Positions 2,026 to 27,500 of a stretch of 64,000 nt of DNA are shown here, piece by piece. How positions within the stretch are numbered: the stretch's first letter is position 1; every line of letters begins with the position of its first letter. The position numbers and the translations under genes are program-made. The notes below the pieces were generated by a model. The model was given only the letters and a program-made list of their open reading frames with translations. It ran no database searches and was not told where the DNA came from. Origin of the DNA: Oculina patagonica (taxonomy: Eukaryota). The stretch is from contig NC_135758.1 in the NCBI RefSeq assembly GCF_052425735.1, positions 32,860,001-32,924,000 on the forward strand. Direction: 5' to 3'.

Positions 2026-2541
2026 AGCAACGTCAGCATTTTGTTTGTTATTATGATGTTACGCAACATTCAACCTCGTTCCCAGGGCTTTTCCCTTGGT
2101 GATTTGGAACGGGCTGGGAACGAGGTTGCGCAACATTAGGTTTATTTGAGAACACATTAACTTGACTTATTGCCAAAGCCCTAAGTGGGCATAGGGCCGG
2201 AGAAGGAGGGGGGGGGGGGAACACATTAACGTGGGAGCCTAAACTGTGGAATTTGATCTACATATATTGATCTAAAAAACAGTGTCTCAGATTTTTCTTT
2301 TCTTCCTCCATTAATTTTTTATGAATTTTTAATCCTAAAGAAGCCTTAAAAGCGCCATTTTAAAGTTTAAAAATTTATAAAAAATTAATGGAGGAAGAAA
2401 AGAAAAATCTCAGACACCGTTTTTTAGACCAATATATGTAGATCAAATTCCTCATAAAATTTTGGGCTCTCACGTAATTGTTTTCTCAAATGAACCTAAA
2501 GTTGCGCAACATCATAATTGCAAACAAAATGCTGACGTTGC
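2026..2541. mobile_element. Palindromic (foldback) element with a nested mini-MITE
   Basis: gcaacgtcagcattttgtttg (2026) is inverted against caaacaaaatgctgacgttgc (2521), with inner arms symmetric about ~2350. Nested caacctcgttcccagg...ctgggaacgaggttg (2071-2128) is flanked by a 9-bp duplication, cgcaacatt. Confidence 0.65.
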
Positions 2542-5500
2542 GAACAGTAAAGCTAGAAAACAGGATAAGCGCGCGCGGGAATACGTTACATTGATCTCTT
2601 TTCCGTATTATGTAACGTACCGTTAACTAAAAGCCAAATCAGGGTAAATCTCTCTAAAACCACGTTTCAAACTGTGGTACCACAGCTGGCCCTACGTGGC
2701 TGAGCTAACTGTTTACAATCTATACCGATGATACGTTTACAAAAAGTTTAAAACTGGCAAAAGTCTAATGACCTAAGTTAGGAAAGTTCGTTGGATGTGT
2801 TTAACAATTGATGATGAGATTACTTTACTAAAAATTGCCGTAAACTATATAAGCTTTCGCAGTTATGTTTTAAACATTGTTATTAGGATTTAATTTCGGT
2901 AAATTAAATCTCTTAAAAACAAAAATAATTTACTCACCATCGGAAAAAGCTGAGCGCTTGGCACGGAACAAACTCGCTTGGTCGTTTTCATTTGTTAGCT
3001 CGCGACGGTTTGTTGTTCACGCGTACTTTAAATTTGAACGCTCGCATCATGCGTGCGCGCGCAATCTGGGCACCAAAAAGAGTGGGTATTGGCACAGCGC
3101 GCGGCTAAAAATAAGTGAGGGAAAAGTTTTGACGTCTCAGGACAATACCTTGACATTAAAATCCAAGAACTGCACGAAATTCGGCTATGTTACTTGACGA
3201 CTGGCTATTGGGTTTTACTTGGTAGTAACAGGTTGTCTTTACAAAAAAAAAAAAAAAAAAAAAAAAACTGTTTCTTGTTGTTATTATCTAGTTTTAAACT
3301 TTTTGTAAACGTATCATCGGTACAGATTGTAAACAGTTAGCTCAGCCACGTAGGGCCAGCTGTGGTACCACAGTTTGAAACGTGGTTTTAGAGAGATTTA
3401 CCCTGATTTGGCTTTTAGTTAACGGTACGTTACATAATACGGAAAAGAGATCAATGTAACGTATTCCCGCGCGCGCTTATCCTGTTTTCTAGCTTTACTG
3501 TTCGCAAATTAATTATCTCTCTAAAGGGTCTGTCACTGTGCCCCTGACGAGAATGGCAGACTTTCTGAGCTTTCATGACAATCTACTCCGATCAAAGAAA
3601 ACTTACTAGTGAGCTCACTATTATAAATTCCTTAATTAAACTAAAATAGTAATTTATCTAAGCGATAAATTTAAATAAAGACAACAGATCACTACTAAGT
3701 AAACCACCATAGCCAGTCATTGAGTCTGTTACTTACACAAACATAACTATAATATTAGGACTTTTCTTTACCATCTAGTCTGTTAACTCTCTAGTCAGTC
3801 AGTCTTATGGATGGTTTTCTGCACTTTCGACCTTCGTCTGCTCGGTCAGTTTGTTCAGACCTTTCAGGTGCTTATGCACATGTTTGGCTGTTCACTCGGC
3901 AGTTCATTCGAATCGTTGTTTCTGCAGTCTTCATATCCGTTACTTACATGAACAGTAAAAGCCGAAATATTAAAACCTATAGAGTTCCGAAACTTTTTGG
4001 TTTTAATATCATAAATGGCATGCCACAGCGTTGGAACTATTCCTTCGCTTAGGAAAATCAAAATAACAATTTGCTTTAACCATATGCCGGATCTCGATCC
4101 CACCATATGGCGGACCATGTCCAACTCAAGATCCAGTCCTCCGTGGGTCAGTTGTGCTAGACCTCTTTTCGTTTCGAGATAGGCGAAAACGTCTATAAAA
4201 CGACCTTGTTAGTACCCACAAAGAAATGGTTTGTCTATGGCACTCAATTTCTTTGTAAAGACGGTTGGATGTATCCGGGAAGGAGAGCTCATGGCCCGTA
4301 AACTTTCAGTGGATTTTGCCATTTTGTTAGGTATAAAATAATTCAGTTTTAAACCGAAGATAATATAACAAGAAACAGTTTTTTTTTTTTTTTTTTGTAA
4401 AGACAACCTGTTACTACCAAGTAAAACCCAATAGCCAGTCGTCAAGTAACATAGCCGAATTTCGTGCAGTTCTTGGATTTTAATGTCAAGGTATTGTCCT
4501 GAGACGTCAAAACTTTTCCCTCACTTATTTTTAGCCGCGCGCTGTGCCAATACCCACTCTTTTTGGTGCCCAGATTGCGCGCGCACGCATGATGCGAGCG
4601 TTCAAATTTAAAGTACGCGTGTACAACAAACCGTCGCGAGCTAACAAATGAAAACGACCAAGCGAGTTTGTTCCGTGCCAAGCGCTCAGCTTTTTCCGAT
4701 GGTGAGTAAATTATTTTTGTTTTTAAGAGATTTAATTTACCGAAATTAAATCCTAATAACAATGTTTAAAACATAACTGCGAAAGCTTATATAGTTTACG
4801 GCAATTTTTAGTAAAGTAATCTCATCATCAATTGTTAAACACATCCAACGAACTTTCCTAACTTAGGTCATTAGACTTTTGCCAGTTTTAAACTTTTTGT
4901 AAACGTATCATCGGTATAGATTGTAAACAGTTAGCTCAGCCACGTAGGGCCAGCTGTGGTACCACAGTTTGAAACGTGGTTTTAGAGAGATTTACCCTGA
5001 TTTGGCTTTTAGTTAACGGTACGTTACATAATACGGAAAAGAGATCAATGTAACGTATTCCCGCGCGCGCTTATCCTGTTTTCTAGCTTTACTGTTCGCA
5101 AATTAATTATCTCTCTAAAGGGTCTGTCACTGTGCCCCTGACGAGAATGGCAGACTTTCTGAGCTTTCATGACAATCTACTCCGATCAAAGAAAACTTAC
5201 TAGTGAGCTCACTATTATAAATTCCTTAATTAAACTAAAATAGTAATTTATCTAAGCGATAAATTTAAATAAAGACAACAGATCACTACTAAGTAAACCA
5301 CCATAGCCAGTCATTGAGTCTGTTACTTACACAAACATAACTATAACATTAGGACTTTTCTTTACCATCTAGTCTGTAAACTCTCTAGTCAGTCAGTCTT
5401 ATGGATGGTTTTCTGCACTTTCGACCTTCGTCTGCTCGGTCAGTTTGTTCAGACCTTTCAGGTGCTTATGCACATGTTTGGCTGTTCACTCGGCAGTTCA

Positions 5501-5663
5501 TTCGAATCGTTGTTTCTGCAGTCTTCATATCCGTTACTTACATGAACAGTAAAAGCCGAAATATTAAAACCTATAGAGTTCCGAAACTTTTTGGTTTTAA
5601 TATCATAAATGGCATGCCACAGCGTTGGAACTATTCCTTCGCTTAGGAAAATCAAAATAACAA
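2538..5663. repeat. Unclassified repeat family, array 1: inverted partial copy (2538-~3289), forward partial copy (3290-4069), full 1594-bp unit (4070-5663)
   Basis: Identical ORFs at 2877-3197(+) and 4442-4762(-), and at 3807-4052 and 5401-5646 (offset 1594). Confidence 0.9.
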
Positions 5664-5917: not shown

Positions 5918-6673
5918 TTGAAAAAATAACATCAAAACACAGTCAGCTAAACAAAACGAGTGAAGTCGGTGTTGCGCGAGAACAACTATCCACCATCTTT
6001 TATTAACAAGTGTGAGAGATCACTGTCAAAACCACCAGCAGATTTACCAACTAATGGCTTCGTGGTACTCCCCTATGTTCAAGGCATTTCCGAAAAGATT
6101 GGCCGCATTTTGAGACAACAAGAGATCAAAGTCGCCTACAAACCGCTAAAAACTGTAAACAGTTTGTTTCCGCGCCCAAAGGCTCAAAATGATGTTGACC
6201 GCCCAAGATCTGGCGTAGTTTACAAAATCAATTGCACCAACTGTAACTTTGTATACTACGGTCAAACGGAGCGACCATTAAAGACCCGGATTGCGGAACA
6301 CAAACGAGCAGTGGCCATATTCGACCATGACTCAAAGATCTCCTGTCATGTACATGAAAATAATCACCACATGGATTTCAATGCCGTCAATGTAGTTGGA
6401 CATGAGCGAAATTACCACAAGCGACTCTTTTTGGAAGCCTGGTTGTCCATAAAGGATACGCACTCTGGGAACGACCATGCTGTCATCCCAGAGGTTTACA
6501 AGTCCTTGTCACGCGCATGAGTTTCGCGCCACGTTTTCTTTTGTTTCAAACTTTTACACGTTAACGTGCTGCTACTTTTTTAAATCGCGTGTGAAAGCTT
6601 TGATTTTTTAACTGATGAAGGCTTAAGCAATAGCCGAAACGTCTTGAAAAAATAACATCAAAACACAGTCAGC
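5918..6673 (+). mobile_element. Penelope-like element fragment: RT C-terminal/linker region plus GIY-YIG endonuclease, with 30-bp terminal direct repeats
   Basis: ORF 5960-6520 has LPYVQGISEKI and GVVYKINCTNCNFVYYGQT...RIAEH...LEAW. ttgaaaaaataacatcaaaacacagtcagc occurs at 5918-5947 and 6644-6673. Confidence 0.9.
6603..6653 (+). ncRNA. Minimal type I hammerhead ribozyme of the Penelope-like element
   Basis: Stem I attttttaa, CTGATGA (6612-6618), stem II GGCT/AGCC, GAAA (6636-6639), C GTC^ (predicted cleavage after 6643), stem I' ttgaaaaaat. Confidence 0.85.
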
Positions 6674-16433: not shown

Positions 16434-19400
16434 ATGGCACAACCAAGCAGAATTTTACCCCAAAGTAAAGAGACTCTCCTGAAGTCTTACACTAAACGCC
16501 TGAAGGATGATGTAAAGTCAATACTTGATAACTTCACAGAAATTGTTAAATCTTCCAAGGTACATTTTACACTAGCTGTCATGCGTGTGTTTTTATGTTT
16601 TCTTAATGGTAGTCAACTTACAGGTGTTATTATTAAACCAAATGTTTGTTGTTCAAAGGTTGAAAATGAAACTCAAGTATCTCGGCTAACACAGTCTGCC
16701 CAGGATCAGTATGAAGTAAACGTCAGGGCTGCTAATATTGTAAGTTTGTCAAGTGTGAGGTTGAGCACAACATAGAACCCAGTCTGTAGAGTATAGCAGA
16801 AGTCAATGAGATCCCGCGTGCACCACGAGGGGTGCACATACCGCTGAAGAGGTCTATCTTCACAAAGATAACCCAAGCTCCCTCTGGAAGATTATAAATC
16901 GGGTCATACCATCCAGAGTCAAGGAAAGACCGACCTATTCGAAAGACTTAAAATCTATAGCAGACGACTTTAATATCTTCTTTTCCTCTGTTGGGAAAAC
17001 TGCTGCTATAGCTTCTTCAGAGCTTGCACGTGAAAACAACATCGCTCTTCCGAGATCCTCGCCGGTTAATATAAGACCACACCCACAAGAGCTCTTTAAT
17101 CTTAAGTGTGTCTCACTTGAACACGTGTGCCGTATAGTTCTATCGTTACCATTAAATAAGTTTCCTGGACCAGACAAGGTGAGCATGCGTGTTATCAGAG
17201 ACTGTCTTCCGGTGATTTTGGGTCCTTTGACGGAGATCATTAACTGCTCTCTATCCACCAACACCTTTCCAACAGCATGGAAATCAGCGGAAGTAATACC
17301 ATTACTTAAAGAAGGTGATCATGAAGTGGCGTCTAACAACCGCCCCCTGTCTCTTTTAAGCGTTGTTTCTAAAGTACCGTATTTTCTCAATTAGACGCCC
17401 CCGGCGTTTATTTAAAACTTGGCTCCGTGGATCCGGCGTTTATTTGAATGGTGCAGTTTATTCGAGCAAAATGTTTATTAAACAAGGGTTTTTAATCATT
17501 ATTTATGACATGAATGTATCTTGCCATCATACCTAAAGCATGTTACACCTCAAATAAATGCCTAAAAGGCTTAGGTACCACTCTACCTTGGAGACCCAGC
17601 GTTTATTCGGGGCCCGGCGTTTAATCGAGAAAATACGGTATGCGAGAAAATAGTTTTTGAACAGTTTACCAACTATTTAGTGAGTAACAACCAGCTAACC
17701 TCCCATCAGAGTGGAAACAAGAAATATCATTCTATTGAGACACTTAATGTATTTATTACGGATTCAATATTAGAAAGCATGGACAAGAAGCAGCTCACTG
17801 CGCTAGTATTGCTCGACCTCTCAAAGGCCTTTGACAGTATTAACCATATACGTTTACTACAGAAATTAACAAACATTGGCGCATCGCCTGCAACAGTGGA
17901 ATGGTTCAAGAGCTATGTATCAAGTCGCTCCCAGTCAGTACGCATCCAATCTACACTGTCAGAGCCACTACTGTTAACACATGGTGTACCTCAGGGTGCA
18001 ATCCTTTTGCCACTTCTTTTCTGTATATACCTTAACGACCTACCTGGTCTATCCCTTTCCTGTGGCCTCGAATCGTACGTCGACGATTCAAAACTATACC
18101 TATCCTTTCCTATGCCTGACATTGAAGAAGCAATGCAGAAACTTCAGCAAGATCTACATGAAGTTGCAACGTGGTGCTGTGAGAACGATTTATTAATAAA
18201 TCCGGATAAAACCAAATTTTTACTCATTGGTACCAGGCAGTTGATGGGCAGACTTGATCTACTCCATCAGTCTCTTTTTTCGGCAAGCGCCTTCATCCTG
18301 CAGCATCTGCCATGGATTTGGGTGTGTCCCCAGACCCCAACCTTACTTACAACAACCATATCTCCAGAGTTGTATCTTCATGTTTTTCTAAGCTTTGTCA
18401 GATAAACAGAGTAAGATCAAGCTTCGATGCTAAGACCTTGGAAATGCTCATTAAGTCTTTAGTTTTTAGCAAAATGCTATATTGCTCGACTGTTTGGGCA
18501 AACACGTCATCCTCGAACATAAAAAAACTCCAGCATGTCCAAAACTTTGGTTACAAAATTGTTACCAACTCAAGGAAGTACGACCACGTGACTCCACTTC
18601 TCCGTCAGCTAAACTGGGTGCCTTTAAAAGAACAACTAGCCTTTAGAGATTTAGTATTAATGTACAAATGTCTAAATAATTTAGCACCCAGTAAATTTAA
18701 GCAACAAGTTTTGTAAAAGGTCTGATGTTCATGGACGAAAAACCCGCCAACACCAGAGCTTGCAAATTCCACTGTTCAGGACCGCAGCAGGCCAAAGAAC
18801 ATTTACATACAGAGCGGTAAACCTATGGAACAGCCTTGATATTGAAATCAAAAACGCTAACTCTCTGTACTCTTTTAAATCAAAGCTTAGGAATCATCTT
18901 CTTTTAAACTTTTAATCATTATTTTATTTAGTTTTCAATTTTATTTGTAAATATTAGTGTTAAGTAGATTTATTTTTTATTGTAAATAGTTTCTGAAAAG
19001 CCCTATGGGGAGATTACTATAATAATTAAAGTTCTTATCTTAATTCAGGAACTCGTGTGTGCATGGTTAATGTCTTGATGATGATGTCGCCTGCAATGAG
19101 GGTAGCAAAGGGTTTATGTGTGACACGTGAAAAGGGCAAAAATTAGTCCGTAACGTGTGAAAATAGGGCAAAAATTATACCATGACGCGTGAAAATAGCT
19201 AGAAAAGACGTGTTTCGTGAATTCTGCTGTTTCAAGTATACATGAGGCTTGAATTTGGTTAAAATTTGTACGTGAAACGGGATCACGACACCCCCTTTGC
19301 TACCCTTTGCAATGCTGCAAACTGGTGTGTACAATGAATATTTAGAAAAAAGGCTCGCATATGCACTTACCATACTCTGCAGACTGGCATGAAACTCTTA

Positions 19401-19803: not shown

Positions 19804-20763
19804 CCAGCTCCTATATTTGTGACTACAGCTTTAGTTTAATAGGTAGCAAGTAACTTGTTTCAACGTTTTTGCTGCTATTCTTGCTGATTTTTCCTGTGGA
19901 AGCCTTCATCCAGGAAATGTCAGCAGCATGGGAGGTCAAGTTCTTTTCAAGTTTTGTCCCATTCAAATGTGTTGCAGTTGTCCCGCATTCATGTGTACAA
20001 TTTCTTCGCAGGTAGTGTATATAGGGAAGAAGTATCCAAGAAGTTTGGAAGGCTCCCCTTTTAGGTTAAAATGGAATGAAGGAGGGGAGGGGAGGCCGCA
20101 TGTCACCTACCTTAACTTGTATGATGGATGAAATGGCACTGTGGATACCCTTTGAGTTTCAGAGTAGAGTTTGCGTATTTCACAACTGTCGCAATAAATT
20201 TTTGTGAATTGATACCTTGTGTCTGTTATAAAATTAAGTCACTTAGTTTTCAAGATTTTGCCTGCATAGATTAATGTTTGGAAACAAATAAAGTGCCAAA
20301 GTTATAATGGACTTTTTGTGACAGGGTGATACATGTTTTGTACAGATGATACGTGGTGTAATGGGGTGATAGATGGGTATTACAGGGTTTGAAAATGTAA
20401 AATACATGGTGTTTAACTGTAAAATTTTTGAATGCAGGACAATGCAGTGGCAAATCTTAAGCTTTCATTTTAGATAAGAAAATGTTCTAACTTTATTTTG
20501 TCCTTATAATTCAACTTTATCATAGCAAAGAGCTTTGTTGTCAAGGATTTAATTTGTTCATTTTATAGCCACCAAGGTTTTATTAGCCACTTTCACATAA
20601 AAAGCCACTCTTTTGCATATAACTAGACAAAGGAGATGGGAAAACAATTACTAGTATCAGATAACACTTTAATAAATAAATTCAAAGTTCAATTATTTAT
20701 TTACAGTAATTACAAAATATATCAGTATCCATAACAATAAATAAATAAGTAAACAAATCCTAG

Positions 20764-20886
20764 AAAGCACATGTACATAATTCAAATATCTGATATCTAT
20801 ACTGCCAAAGACCTTTGCTTAATCACTTTTCTTTTCCTGACCCAGTTATGTTTTGCTCTGTACTAAAGCAGAAAAGAGATTAAATT
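20764..20886. repeat. Left copy of a 123-bp direct repeat (putative TSD of array 2)
   Basis: Identical by eye to 24362-24484. Confidence 0.92.
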
Positions 20887-23800
20887 GTCGTTTGATTATT
20901 TCAAGCGAAGGAATAGTCCCAACGCTGTGGGATGCCATTAATGATATTAAAACCAAAAAGTTTCGGAACTCAGCAGGTTTTAATATTTCGGCTTTTAGTG
21001 TTTATGTAAGTTACGGATGAAAAACTGCAACAACGATCAGAATGAACCGCCGAGTGAACAGCCCAACATGTGCATAAGCGCACGAATGGTCTGAACAAAC
21101 AGACTGAGCAGACGAAGGTCGAAAGTGCAGAAAACCATCCATAAGACTGATTGACTAGAGAGTTTACTGACTTGATGGTAAAAAAAATCCTAATAGTTAT
21201 GTTTGTGTAAGAAACAGACGCAATGACTGGCTATGGTGGTTTACTTAGTAGTGATCTGCTGTCCTTATTTAATTTTATCGCTTAGGCAAACTACCATTTT
21301 TATTTTAATCAAGGAATTCATAATAGTGAGCTCACTAAAAGTTTTTCTTGGATCGGAGTAGATTGTCATGAAAGCTCAGAAAGTCTGTCATTCTCGTCAG
21401 GGGCACAGTGACAGACCCGTTAGAGAGATTATTATTTCGCGAAGATTACGCTAGAAAACAGGATAAGCGCGCGCGGGAAGACGTTACATCGATCTTTCTA
21501 TCCGTATTGTAACGTACCGTTAAACTAAAAGCCAAATCAGGGTAAATCTCTCTAAACCACGTTTCAAACTGTGGTACCACAGCTGGCCCTACGTGGCTGA
21601 GCTGACTGTTATCAATCTATACCGATGAAACGTTTACAAAATGTTAAAATAAGGCAAAAATGAATGACATAAGTTTTAAAGTTCGTTGAATGTGTTTCGA
21701 ATTGATGATGAGATTATATCACTTAAAAGTGCCGCAAACTATTAAAATAAGCTTTCGCAGCTGTCTTTAACCATTGTTGTTTGGATTAAAGTGGTAAATT
21801 GTTTTTGATTATTTGAAGCGTGGTTTAGAGAGATTTACCCTGATTTGGCTTTTAGTTTATCGATACGTTACAATACGGATTAAAGATCAATGTAACGTCT
21901 TCCCGCACGCGCTTATCCCCTTTTTTTTTTCTAGCTTACTCTTAGCGAAATAATTATCTCTCTAAGGGGTCTGTCACTGTGCCCCTGACGAGAATGGCAG
22001 ACTTTTTGAGCTTTCATGACAATCTACTCCGATCCAGGAAAACTTATTAGTGAGCTCACTATTATAAATTCTTCAATTTAACTAACAATGGTAATTTACT
22101 TAAGCGATAAAATTAAATAAGAACAACAGATCACTACTAAGTAAACCACCATAGCCACTCATTGCGTCGGTTACTTACACAAACATAACTATTAGGACTT
22201 TTTTCTTTACCATCTATAGCTAGTCAGTAAACCCTCTAGTCAGTCAGTCTTATGGATGGTTTTCTGCACTTTCAACCTTCGTCTGCTCAGTCTGTTTGTT
22301 CAGGCCTTTCAGGTGCTTATGCACATGTCAGGCTGTTCACTCAGCGGTTCATTCGGATCGTTGTTTTTGCAGTCTTCATCCGTTACTTACATAAACAGTA
22401 AAAGCCGAAATATTAAAACCTACTGAGTTACGAAACTTTTTGGTTTTAATATCACAAATGGCATCCCACAGCGTTGGAACTATTCCTTCGCTTCAAATAA
22501 TCAAAAACAATTTTTGGTTTTCCTTTAATCCTAACAACAATGTTCAAAACATAGCTGCGAAAGCTTATTTAGTTTACGGCACTCATTAGTAATATAATCT
22601 CATCATTTATTGAAAACACATTCAACGAATTTTTAAAACTTAGGTCATAACATTTTGCCTTATTTTAACATTTTGTTAACGTTTCATCGGTATAGATTGA
22701 AAACAGTTAGCTCAGCCACGTAGGGCCAGCTGTGGTACCACAGTTTGAAACGTGGTTTAGAGAGATTTACCCTGATTTGGCTTTTAGTTATCGATACGTT
22801 ACAATACGGATAAAAGATCAATGTAACGTCTTCCCGCGCGCGCTTATCCCTTTTTTTCTAGCTTACTCTTCGCGAAATAATTATCTCTCTAAGGGGTCTG
22901 TCACTGTGCCCCTGACGAGAATGGCAGACTTTCTGAGCTTTCATGACAATCTACTCCGATCCAGGAAAACTTATTAGTGAGCTCACTATTATAAATTCTT
23001 CAATTTAACTAACAATGGTAATTTACCTAAACGATAAAATTAAATAAGAACAACAGATCACTACTAAGTAAACCACCATAGCCACTCATTGCGTCGGTTA
23101 CTTACACAAACATAACTATTAGGACTTTTTTCTCTACCATCTATAGCTAGTCAGTAAACCCTCTAGTCAGTCAGTCTTATGGATGGTTTTCTGCACTTTC
23201 AACCTTCGTCTGCTCAGTCTGTTTGTTCAGGCCTTTCAGGTGCTTATGCACATGTCAGGCTGTTCACTCAGCGGTTCATTCGGATCGTTGTTTTTGCAGT
23301 CTTCATCCGTTACTTACATAAACAGTAAAAGCCGAAATATTAAAACCTACTGAGTTACGAAACTTTTTGGTTTTAATATCACAAATGGCATCCCACAGCG
23401 TTGGAACTATTCCTTCGCTTCAAATAATCAAAAACAATTTTAATCCTAACAACAATGTTCAAAACATAGCTGCGAAAGCTTATTTAGTTTACGGCACTCA
23501 TTAGTAATATAATCTCATCATTTATTGAAAACACATTCAACGAATTTTTAAAACTTAGGTCATAACATTTTGCCTTATTTTAACATTTTGTTAACGTTTC
23601 ATCGGTATAGATTGAAAACAGTTAGTTCAGCCACGTAGGGCCAGCTGTGGTACCACAGTTTGAAACGTGGTTTAGAGAGATTTACCCTGATTTGGCTTTT
23701 AGTTATCGATACGTTACAATACGGATAAAAGATCAATGTAACGTCTTCCCGCGCGCGCTTACCCCTTTTTTTTTTTTCTAGCTTACTCTTCGCGAAATAA

Positions 23801-24361
23801 TTATCTCTCTAAGGGGTCTGTCACTGTGCCCCTGACGAGAATGGCAGACTTTCTGAGCTTTCATGGCAATCTACTCCGATCCCGGGAAAACTTATTAGTG
23901 AGCTCACTATTATAAATTCTTCAATTTAACTAACAATGGTAATTTACCTAAGCGATAAAATTAAATAGGGACAACAGATCACTACTTAGTAAACCACCAT
24001 AGCCACTCATTGCGTCGGTTACTTACACAAAGTAACATTAAACTATTAGGACTCTTTTCTTTACCATCTAGACGTCAGTAAACCCTCTAGTCAGTCAGTA
24101 TTATGGATGGTTTTCTGCACTTTCGACCTTCGTCTGCTCAGTCTGTTTGTTCAGACCTTTCACGTGCTTATGCACATGTCAGGCTGTTCACTCGGCAGTT
24201 CATTCGGATCGTTGTTTTTGCAGTCTTCATCCGTTACTTACATAAACAGTAAAAGCCGAAATATTAAAACCTACTGAGTTCCGAAACTTTTTGGTTTTAA
24301 TATCACAAATGGCATCCCACAGCGTTGGAACTATTCCTTCGCTTCAAATAATCAAAAACAA
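20887..24361. mobile_element. Unclassified repeat family, array 2: inverted ~0.93-kb unit (20887-~21819), forward partial unit (~21820-22510), two forward ~925-bp units (~22511-23437, ~23438-24361)
   Basis: Same sequence family as 2538-5663; both ends carry the same terminus (...ctattccttcgctt[c/g]aaataatcaaa) in inverted orientation; flanked by the 123-bp direct repeat. Confidence 0.88.
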
Positions 24362-24484
24362 AAAGCACATGTACATAATTCAAATATCTGATATCTATAC
24401 TGCCAAAGACCTTTGCTTAATCACTTTTCTTTTCCTGACCCAGTTATGTTTTGCTCTGTACTAAAGCAGAAAAGAGATTAAATT
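24362..24484. repeat. Right copy of the 123-bp direct repeat
   Basis: Identical by eye to 20764-20886. Confidence 0.92.
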
Positions 24485-24589
24485 CTGAATTCAATGCCAG
24501 GGAACAACACTCAAAATAATTGACACTGACAAGTAGAAAAGGTTGATGCCATCTGATGGTGTGGCTCATCAAGCAAGAGTCTCCCATCA

Positions 24590-27500
24590 TCATTTTTTTG
24601 TGAAATCAGTTATTTTCCTTGACTTCTTGCTTGGCTGGGACTGTTTGTCACTCTTCCTTTTGACTGGTGAGCTTTTGCTTTCTTTGCGAGGGTCTGAAAA
24701 GTGAATAACGAAAGGTTTGTTACAGGAAACAGTATCCAATAAGGGACATTTCTTAAAGGAAGTAAAAAAAAAAATGAAGACTGTATAACAAGGCAAAATA
24801 TAGCAAATAAAGAACTGAGCTATTCCCTTAAAAAAATAGTTGAGTTTGTTGTCAATTCTTGTTTACTTCAGGGTTGATTATGGTCTTTAAGTCACGTTTA
24901 TGGTCATCTAAGATAAAACCCATTAAGAACATTCATTTGGATAAGAATACTTCATTAAGACTTGGCGTTAAGGATGCGTGCTTATGAATTGGTAAGGCCC
25001 TATGTGCCATGAGGCACGAGGAGGATAGGTGAAAGCTTATGAGTAGGTGCATGAGAATAAAAGATGATTAAGTCACCAATAAAAGGCATGCACTAAGTGC
25101 AGGAACAGGGCCTGAAGTGATAATTCAAATTACAGTAGAACCCCGGTAACTCGAACTGTGAAGGGAAACGAAAAACAGTTCGAGTTAGCAGGGTTTCGAG
25201 TTATCAGGGTAGATTGAATATTTAATTCGCCAAGTTAATAATTGATAGTTTACTGATTTTTCAGCACTTTAGTATACAGCACAGTGTAAGTTAAACTTAT
25301 CTCATCAGAAACTCTTACACGATCATAAATTCTTAGGATAAGAATGGAAAAAGGCTGTCAAATACGTGATCTGTTTTCATTTGTTGCTCTATTCAATAGG
25401 CAACCGTGGCGAGTTGCAAGAACCGAAATTCGAGTTATCGGGGTAAATTTGACCCAAATTTGATAAAGGGAAACAAAATTTAGTTCGAATTAGCGGGGTT
25501 TTTGAGTAATCCGAGTTCGAGTTAACCGAGTAAAAATGACTGAAACGTGAGTTCAAATCCAAAGGAAATGGAAGTTTGTTTGAGTTATCCGAGCCGAGTT
25601 ACCGGGGTTCTACTGTAGTCACCTTCATCTGCACCGCCACCATAATGGTTGGCTCTGGCCTTCTTCATCCGAGCAAGATTGGTATTCACAGCCACCTTGT
25701 GATCCACAATCGGGCGAGGATAGTCTTTACCAATAACACATCCTGCTGTTCTTTGCACACTGAGTGGGGCAGTCCACGGCTCATAGATGTATTTTGGTGG
25801 GTATTTCTTCAAAACTGGTACATATTTCCTGTCAAAAAAATAAATTTCTTGTAAAATAAGCAGTGTAATGCCCATAACCCCAGCCATAATGTTAAACAAT
25901 GGGTAGTTTTAATACTGCATATGTCAATGCTCTGGTTGCCAGACTTGCAAGCACTTCAATGCTATCACCAAGATACGAGGCCCTAAATGTATCTTTGCCA
26001 TCAGTGATCATTTTACAAAAATGACAGAAAATCTTTGTGTACTGCATATCTGGCCATAGATGCTCCCATCTCTATATCAGTGAAACTGGGCGAAGCCTCA
26101 GAAGTTATTTTGGTGAGCATTGCGAAGCATACACAACACCATTTCTGGTTTCCCTGTGGCACAAAATTTTAACTCTAAGGGCCACAGTATCACAGATGTC
26201 CAGGTGCGGGGAATGCATTTGTGTAGTGGAAACAACATCCAGCGCAAAAAACTTGAAATGAGGCTGATTTTTCGCCTGGGAACAGTGCAGCCAAACAGAC
26301 TTAACATCGATTTTAGCTTTATTTAAATTGTGTGTGTGTGCTTTTTTGTGCGCACACGCTCTCAAACTTACGTAGTTACAAACACTGCGTATTATAATGG
26401 ATTTTATAACACTGATAAAGGTTAGTATACCTGAAATGTCTGCTGTAAGTAACTTTTTATGGCACATTTTGATATTTAATGTCTATAATATTAGTAGTAT
26501 ACTTAACCTTTCAAAAACTCGGTAGTTCAAAACCTAACTAACGATTGCATTTTTTGCTACCAACAATCATATGACAAACAAAAAGGATCGAAATCTACCA
26601 ATCACAACTGAACAGTGTGGCCTTTTTACTATGACTATCTGATTCCTTAAAATTGAACAGACTGAACCAATACGCCCAGTCAGCAGAAGGCAGCAATAGC
26701 CTCTTTACATGTTCCTTGTGTAACAGCTACGAAAGTGCCTAGACTATGAGCAGTCGCTATTTTTTGCAGAGTCAGTCAAGTGTGAAGTGAAAAAAATCAC
26801 TTATTTTTTCGCTTCAAGCTTGACGGACTCTTCAAAAAAAAATTTTTCCTTCAAGCTCGACGGACTCTGTGAAAAAATAGGGACTGCTCGTAGTCTAGAA
26901 AGTGCCATGATCAGTTTTCAAATTTATCTCACTTGATGTATTCTCCATTGGGATCAGTTTTCTTGCCAAATGCCACAGGACTGTAAACCCTGAAGTAAGC
27001 ATGAAAAAAGGCACTTGCAGATAACCACAGCCAGTTCCCAGCATTTAAACTCCAGTCGTGGTCAAGAAGATACTTCTCAAAAACCTGAAATGACACAATC
27101 ATATTACTAGCCAGGCTGTTATAGGAGTTTTAGAAAATGTTTGCAAAACCTACTTTTAATTAATGTCATACTGAACAAAGTCAGGCAGATAGCTTGATTG
27201 TATTTGATCAGCTTCGCTACACAGTACTAGACAGAATGGGCAGATTTTGCGAAGATGTTGAAGTGTTCACTTAAGTACTTAGAGCAAGCAAAAAAATCTA
27301 AATTTACTTAGAGATATAACTGTAATAAAATTGTGTTAAACTAGTTACTGAAGTTAAAGAGAGCAGTCTTGCTACCACATTGCTTTTGAAACTTTATGGT
27401 CTCTTACAGAAAAGAGAAACTAGTCTTGTTTGTTCTTGATGCATCTTGAAAGACCTTAATCAAACTCCTATTACAGAGCTTGATTTGACAAGGTATTTGT

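Follow-up and report, generated by a model that had tools for sequence, protein, structure and literature searches.

INTRODUCTION

Insertions made by Penelope-like elements (PLEs) are known to contain partial tandem copies, inverted 5'-truncated copies and tails (PMC8557442), and a PLE protein has been shown to cut both strands of the DNA, to extend them and to initiate synthesis internally (PMC11167929). In canonical PLEs, 5' truncation follows the sense of the open reading frame (ORF) (PMC8557442, PMC8969392) and reverse transcription begins, in sense orientation, a short distance past the start of the ORF (PMC11167929); the idea of an antisense template for PLEs was raised by Arkhipova et al. 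in 2013 (PMC3846280). Athena and Coprina, which are endonuclease-deficient, contain hammerheads and use telomeric repeats in reverse complement to attach to chromosome ends (PMC8557442). Non-autonomous partners of PLEs are also known (PMC9977147), and (TA)n has been reported as a target preference of several PLE clades (PMC8557442, PMC11167929). Here, a window of 64,000 nucleotides from the coral Oculina patagonica (assembly GCF_052425735.1, contig NC_135758.1, positions 32,860,001 to 32,924,000 of the forward strand) was analyzed, in which a non-coding, inverted and tandem array of a family named N lies between two identical 123-bp repeats. The insert most probably originated in a single retrotransposition event of a non-autonomous PLE family, through double target priming, template switching and a microhomology join.

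RESULTS

An array of family N inserted with a 123-bp target-site duplication

The locus had been described, from the letters of the window alone, as an unclassified mobile element of 3475 bp made of inverted and tandem units, flanked by identical 123-bp repeats and with the same terminus facing outward at both ends. Re-examination of the sequence bore out this structure. The two direct repeats, recovered by a repeat search and checked on the raw sequence, are identical at 123 of 123 positions, and the insert between them (20887-24361) contains a single inverted unit followed by about 2.75 forward ones (Table 1), with start-to-start distances of 927 and 924 bp between the forward units. The outward end on both sides is the fixed 3' terminus of family N, which reads ...AATCAAAAACAA in the forward arm and, as a subfamily variant, ...AATCAAACGAC in the inverted arm. 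The inverted unit is about 90% identical to the forward units, and its nearest relatives are found at C4:39.80 Mb. The two arms meet at TTTGAAGCG, which is common to the reverse-complemented 3' end of the inverted arm and to N 906-914 of forward unit 1. For the left junction a microhomology, aattt, had been proposed; it shrinks to 0-2 nt at most, since GTCG... is the complete terminus of the left-arm subfamily, which recurs at C9. The target 3' ends that acted as primers finish in ...AAATT and ...GCTTT. No ORF longer than 81 amino acids was found within the insert, in agreement with the claim that it encodes no enzyme.

The 123-bp sequence is present at only these two places in the 529-Mb genome, flank and repeat being single-copy, which excludes a chance repeat. 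The internal junctions, namely the head-to-head junction and the 5' junction of forward unit 2, were likewise found at this locus alone, so that the array did not arise by segmental copying of a parent. An empty site was sought in Logan contigs from four public runs, placed on positions 20300-24900. A 2100-bp contig of run X8, from a related coral species, joins 20300-20761 directly to 24360-24900; it omits 3598 bp, corresponding to the insert plus one copy of the repeat, and in either flank its divergence from the window is about 2%. Because this contig carries a single 123-bp copy, the repeat is a true target-site duplication (TSD), as had been postulated: the insertion created a second copy of single-copy target DNA. 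Since related corals carry an A at 20763, a TSD length of 125 bp instead of 123 is possible. In runs X2 and X5 the contigs break at the repeat.

All units of the array differ from one another, by 1.3-10%, the three forward units being the most alike (Table 1). As the two TSD copies are identical at every position, and change after insertion should have left several mismatches in the 123 bp too, this divergence predates the insertion. The sources of the units were different templates or RNAs, or the transcript of an old, diverged array. That the two arms come from different templates supports two independent priming events as opposed to the fold-back of a single cDNA.

Table 1. Components of the insert and of a second array in the window (positions are those of the window)
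Feature	Position	Strand	Remarks
Left TSD copy	20764-20886	no strand	100% identical to 24362-24484; single in the empty site of the related coral
Inverted arm, divergent N subfamily unit (N ~668-1600)	~20887-21820	-	3' terminus abuts left TSD
22 nt of the 3' end of the preceding unit	21799-21820		At the 5' side of the inverted arm
Head-to-head junction, 9-nt microhomology TTTGAAGCG	21812-21820	no strand	From raw sequence
Forward unit 1, 5'-truncated, N 906-1600	21812-22510	+	98.7% identical to unit 2
Forward unit 2, N ~682-1600, 13 extra bases at 5' junction	22511-23437	+	
Forward unit 3, N ~678-1600	23438-24361	+	3' terminus abuts right TSD; 97.4% identical to unit 2, 96.1% to unit 1
Right TSD copy	24362-24484	no strand	Identical to left copy
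Second array, divergent subfamily N': inverted piece, partial unit and full 1594-bp unit	2538-5663	+	

Family N is dispersed in the genome

N is a dispersed, non-coding, non-autonomous PLE-type family, of which the array described above is a young member. The full unit measures 1600 bp (L031:3723-5322), and the units of the insert represent its 3' ~920 bp (N 668/682-1600). A genome search with the unit gave at least 65 scored matches among 366 candidates; almost all of them share the end position and their starts scatter from 14 to 875, a signature of 5' truncation. In the mapped arrays the junctions follow one rule, position 1600 (within a few bases) being followed by a variable start. Head-to-head and tandem arrays were also located at C1:16.04 Mb, C8:27.02 Mb, C8:27.09 Mb, C9:3.18 Mb, C13:35.89 Mb and C13:1.88 Mb. 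The PLE-like architecture suspected at the original locus thus recurs at at least six other loci and matches published PLE structure (PMC8557442). By contrast, the labels "unclassified" and "undescribed system" had to be abandoned, N being a dispersed family whose ends match an RT-encoding element of PLE type in the same genome (RT, reverse transcriptase). No description of the N family was found in a literature search, and the N array represents a new family of non-autonomous PLE arrays, newness being judged from the literature and not from a curated repeat library.

The second array of the window belongs to subfamily N', which is about 80-90% identical to N. Its left end lies at N ~1042, off the canonical terminus, and no TSD was found at this array. 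A 270-bp palindrome (2219-2485) is situated just upstream of it and produced spurious matches to plant microRNAs in Rfam.

An RT-encoding partner of family N

A search for a longer family member encoding an RT, suggested with the original prediction, led to P, an element of 6273 bp that matches the first 255 nt of N (93%) and its last 134 nt (79%). The 5' 255 nt of N match P and a second element, P2, at 93-95%. P contains one long ORF of 831 amino acids, with the motifs LPKVHK, FDFKDLYTNI, GLSMG, RYADD (YADD) and a DKK(G)-type motif, and no second long ORF was found in the 6.3-kb unit. When compared by BLASTP with a PLE ORF of the same genome that contains both RVT_1 and GIY-YIG, it aligned over 412 amino acids (E 3e-12), from the DKG motif through PKxHK and YxDD into the thumb. 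The P ORF stops about 90 amino acids past the thumb, where its endonuclease-bearing relative continues into GIY-YIG. Pfam searches with P and its homologues returned no RT, helix-turn-helix (HTH) or GIY-YIG match, RVT_1 not being reported for P, and a profile search of PDB sequences gave only insignificant matches to retron RTs. Neighbours of the P RT in the Atlas belong to RT/HTH_animal/DUF8422 clusters. Judged by its motifs and alignment, the RT of P is of PLE type and devoid of a GIY-YIG endonuclease; these are traits of the helper, the insert itself being non-coding.

Five intact copies of P were found, at 99-100% identity. N and P pieces are interleaved within the same arrays, where a single junction rule applies to both. 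A P array of 21 kb at C13 comprises an inverted arm, two and a third forward units and a canonical right terminus, and is flanked by the 5-bp TSD TCTGT. P is likely to be the helper that supplies the enzyme in trans.

Another locus (L037, G000:C4:47997000-48000600, ORF 121-2820) encodes a PLE-like RT of 899 amino acids with the motifs TDKNLGW, LPKVHK and RYIDD, 29% identical to that of P and with no recognizable GIY-YIG. From these predicted proteins, several endonuclease-less PLE-like lineages seem to exist in the coral.

The length of the TSD varies widely among arrays

About nine arrays were surveyed for TSDs. The longest, of ~165-171 bp, belongs to an older double-ended array (L015, G000:C13:35886018-35889939, array 231-2422), whose two copies are 87-88% identical and abut both termini. 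The TSD of the insert described here (123 bp) is followed by those of the array at C8:27.09 Mb (~11 bp, ambiguous, inside (TA)n), of L031 (~6 bp, with microhomology) and of the C13 P array (5 bp); none was found at L032, L033 and C9. Accordingly, of the two traits that family copies had been expected to share, the fixed end held for nearly all matches, and the long TSD proved not to be constant. TSDs range from none to ~165 bp, and the 123-bp case is an extreme of this spread, not a defining feature. The stagger is unconstrained, as expected of two uncoupled nicks or of pre-existing breaks.

The array at C8 (G000:C8:27088116-27095389; L017, L018) is double-ended, spans 7 kb, combines pieces of N with pieces of P and lies within a (TA)n microsatellite. 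In the window, two adjoining ORFs of 241 and 134 amino acids (17680-18716), located ~2 kb upstream of the insertion, carry RT motifs of the type found in long interspersed nuclear elements (LINEs), including YVDD, and probably are the remains of a decayed non-long terminal repeat (non-LTR) retrotransposon.

The P ORF runs antisense to copying

The P ORF is located on the strand opposite to the fixed-3'-end polarity of the units. The same layout is found in P2 (C6), where the 3' end is followed by the region 1-255 and then by an antisense ORF running from stop to start. The RTs of P and P2 are 58% identical and their DNAs 68-75% identical, and an identical layout at this distance indicates that the antisense arrangement is conserved and not accidental. 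Truncated copies of P retain N-terminal codons only (amino acids 1-62, 1-86 and 1-387); remoter RT families of the genome, 34% identical, left the usual C-terminal fragments. The 5' truncation relative to the RT ORF that is a trait of PLEs was found in neither P nor P2.

The outward orientation of both fixed ends in double-ended arrays can only be explained if both target 3' ends were primed on a template of N polarity. Two molecules could serve as such a template, an antisense RNA or the cDNA first strand made from the mRNA. A tentative reading, to which we give slightly less than even weight, is that an endonuclease-less coral PLE lineage, comprising P, P2 and the passengers N and N', uses as template the strand antisense to the RT gene that it carries. 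Target-primed synthesis would then proceed on an antisense RNA or on first-strand cDNA, the latter having a 3' end complementary to the 5' end of the mRNA, and the RT gene would be an inverted cargo acting purely in trans. Antisense copying, if true, would constitute natural evidence for the antisense-template idea of 2013 (PMC3846280). Moreover, should the antisense layout hold, the question of which strand serves as template in PLEs would become directly testable, with a defined RT, a cis element of ~400 nt and recent insertions at hand.

A conserved, structured region and the search for hammerheads

Positions 1-255 of N are the best-conserved part common to N, N', P and P2. Their fold, of several helices, is conserved and shows 6-7 doubly changed pairs between two clades, as compared with 0-4 in controls with the pairing partner displaced by 1-3 columns. 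When G-U and A-C pairs were weighed against each other to find the functional strand, folding in the N sense was slightly favored over the opposite strand (alifold, -46.2 versus -42.9 kcal/mol; 7 versus 4 doubly changed pairs), a comparison that involves effectively two clades and is subject to prediction bias. In tandem transcripts of N polarity, region 1-255 sits just downstream of position 1600, and two termini run past 1600 into it, for 79 nt at L004 and for 529 nt in the C13 array, resembling the "tail" of PLEs. Region 1-255 is probably an RT-binding element, a candidate role based on analogy with an anole PLE, in which initiation is internal and the RT is bound downstream of the point of initiation (PMC11167929).

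A motif search detected no hammerhead core (CUGANGA...GAAA) on either strand of N or of the insert. Rfam likewise returned no ribozyme for the insert or the full N unit. A neighbouring Penelope-type mini-element (~5918-6673) shows in the motif search a plain hammerhead core, CTGATGA-hairpin-GAAAC, at ~6612. Rfam missed this core even in a 1-kb scan, and its negative results for PLE-type hammerheads are hence untrustworthy in this genome. A near-palindromic hairpin of 47 nt, CCACG...CTGTGGTACCACAG...GAAACGTGG, is present at N 858-904 (window 22696-22742) and at P 5242-5288; it is 87-91% conserved between N and P, yet its orientation is reversed from one element to the other. This hairpin is not a hammerhead.

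DISCUSSION

Origin of the insert

In the retrotransposition event envisaged here, the target strands would have been broken ~123 bp apart, and each 3'-OH, both ends being T-rich, would have primed DNA synthesis on single-stranded, N-polarity templates, starting from N position 1600. Switching of the polymerase to the 3' end of the next template would generate the tandem, the two growing strands would be joined at the 9-nt microhomology, and fill-in synthesis would produce the TSD. The RT would most likely come in trans from P. Since this RT lacks GIY-YIG, the breaks would stem from a pre-existing lesion or from the endonuclease of an endonuclease-bearing (EN+) PLE of the genome. The original prediction already had an enzyme acting in trans prime the two break ends on one and the same end of the element, and this fits both the data and the published activity of a PLE protein (PMC11167929).

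Several observations weigh against this scheme. P gave no Pfam match to GIY-YIG, and the source of the nicks is thus not explained by P. At least 150 GIY-YIG matches, many of them in head-to-head pairs, were obtained among 860 candidates in the genome. Copying runs antisense to the RT gene of P, so that a simple cis model in which the RT copies its own mRNA cannot apply. In addition, N lacks the hammerhead core, three double-ended arrays have no detectable TSD, and run X1, which bears the same species label, has zero depth over the flanks and offers no independent reads spanning the filled allele. The abundance of GIY-YIG matches raises the alternative that a canonical EN+ PLE mobilizes N, its GIY-YIG making both nicks and its RT copying N, with P as a mere RT-carrying passenger. 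In its favor are the lack of an endonuclease in P, the array placed in (TA)n and the several primer ends in ATT or TT, which correspond to the reported preference of the PLE endonuclease (PMC11167929, PMC8557442). However, the ends of N, both the 5' 255 nt at 93-95% and the 3' end, match P and P2 and no EN+ element examined; the P copies are intact and near-identical; and the hammerhead core of the neighbouring canonical mini-element is absent from N. Mobilization of N by an EN+ PLE therefore seems unlikely.

The constant period of the forward units, 924-927 bp, could also be produced by rolling-circle reverse transcription of a circular RNA instead of switching between linear templates, as proposed for hammerhead retrozymes, which are thought to be non-autonomous PLE derivatives (bioRxiv 10.64898/2026.07.22.740005; PMC7229834). 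One circle would yield identical units, whereas differences of 1.3-3.9% separate the forward units, and a 13-bp insertion distinguishes their junctions, next to identical TSD copies. With no CUGANGA...GAAA core on either strand of N, and with N and P pieces of unequal length combined in other arrays, a circular template is highly improbable. The microhomology at the junctions and the lack of independent read support for the filled allele would suit a rearrangement at the DNA level, by template switching of the microhomology-mediated break-induced replication (MMBIR) or fork stalling and template switching (FoSTeS) kind or by capture of extrachromosomal repeats at a break, or else an assembly artefact. 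Replication-based repair can indeed yield patterns of duplication with inverted insertion. Such origins are the least probable of all, as the same fixed terminus faces outward here and in all other double-ended arrays examined, and corresponds to the 3' end of an RT-bearing element. Furthermore, the units show the 5'-truncation pattern of reverse transcription, the empty site in the related coral is consistent with clean insertion, no other locus has these junctions, and the array would fit into a single long read. The locus as originally described is explained by known PLE biology, namely priming of both strands and template switching that yield an inverted and tandem array, and does not represent a new class of mobile element.

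Comparison with known systems

EN+ PLEs (Penelope/Poseidon, Neptune, Hydra, Naiad) resemble the elements described here in several respects: P has a PLE-type RT with DKG, PKxHK, YxDD and thumb; partial tandems stand behind an inverted 5'-truncated copy; some termini are tailed; both break ends are primed; and targets are AT-rich or (TA)n (PMC8557442, PMC11167929). Unlike these PLEs, P has no GIY-YIG, N is devoid of a hammerhead core, and copying proceeds antisense to the P RT gene. TSDs in the N family reach 123-165 bp, as against 8-10 bp in Adineta vaga (PMC3846280), and tails in the N/P family measure 79 and 529 nt, as against 30-40 nt. With the endonuclease-deficient Athena and Coprina, the system shares a PLE-type RT without endonuclease and the reliance on available 3'-OH ends. 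It differs from them in that the N family is interstitial, the window lying at 32.9 Mb of a 49-Mb chromosome, and inserted in unique DNA; no telomeric repeats were found at N-family junctions in the junction sequences examined.

Chlamys-N4_cRei and the non-LTR retrozymes are, like N, non-coding tandems thought to be mobilized in trans by a PLE RT (PMC9977147, PMC7229834, bioRxiv 10.64898/2026.07.22.740005). Retrozymes have units of 150-450 bp and a type I hammerhead and circularize, whereas N units measure 0.9-1.6 kb, contain no core and are non-identical within an array. R9 of bdelloid rotifers is an R2-like LINE inserted site-specifically in 28S rDNA, with a TSD of ~126 bp of fixed length. 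The exceptional TSD of ~120 bp produced by widely staggered breaks is common to R9 and the present insert, whose target is by contrast unique, non-rDNA sequence; TSDs in the N family vary from 0 to ~165 bp. Features of a Helitron were not found, a 123-bp TSD being present and the coding partner being an RT; readings as a DIRS element or a DNA transposon were dropped along with it on the same grounds and because the fixed end is the 3' end.

Set against known PLEs, the unusual traits of this system are the endonuclease-less helper, interstitial insertion, very long TSDs in some events, the absence of a hammerhead and, above all, the antisense RT gene. The young insertion and its empty site in a sister species demonstrate that primed nicks can lie 123 bp apart. 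Most notable in the comparison is an interstitial, endonuclease-less RT of PLE type whose gene runs antisense to copying in two lineages only 58% identical.

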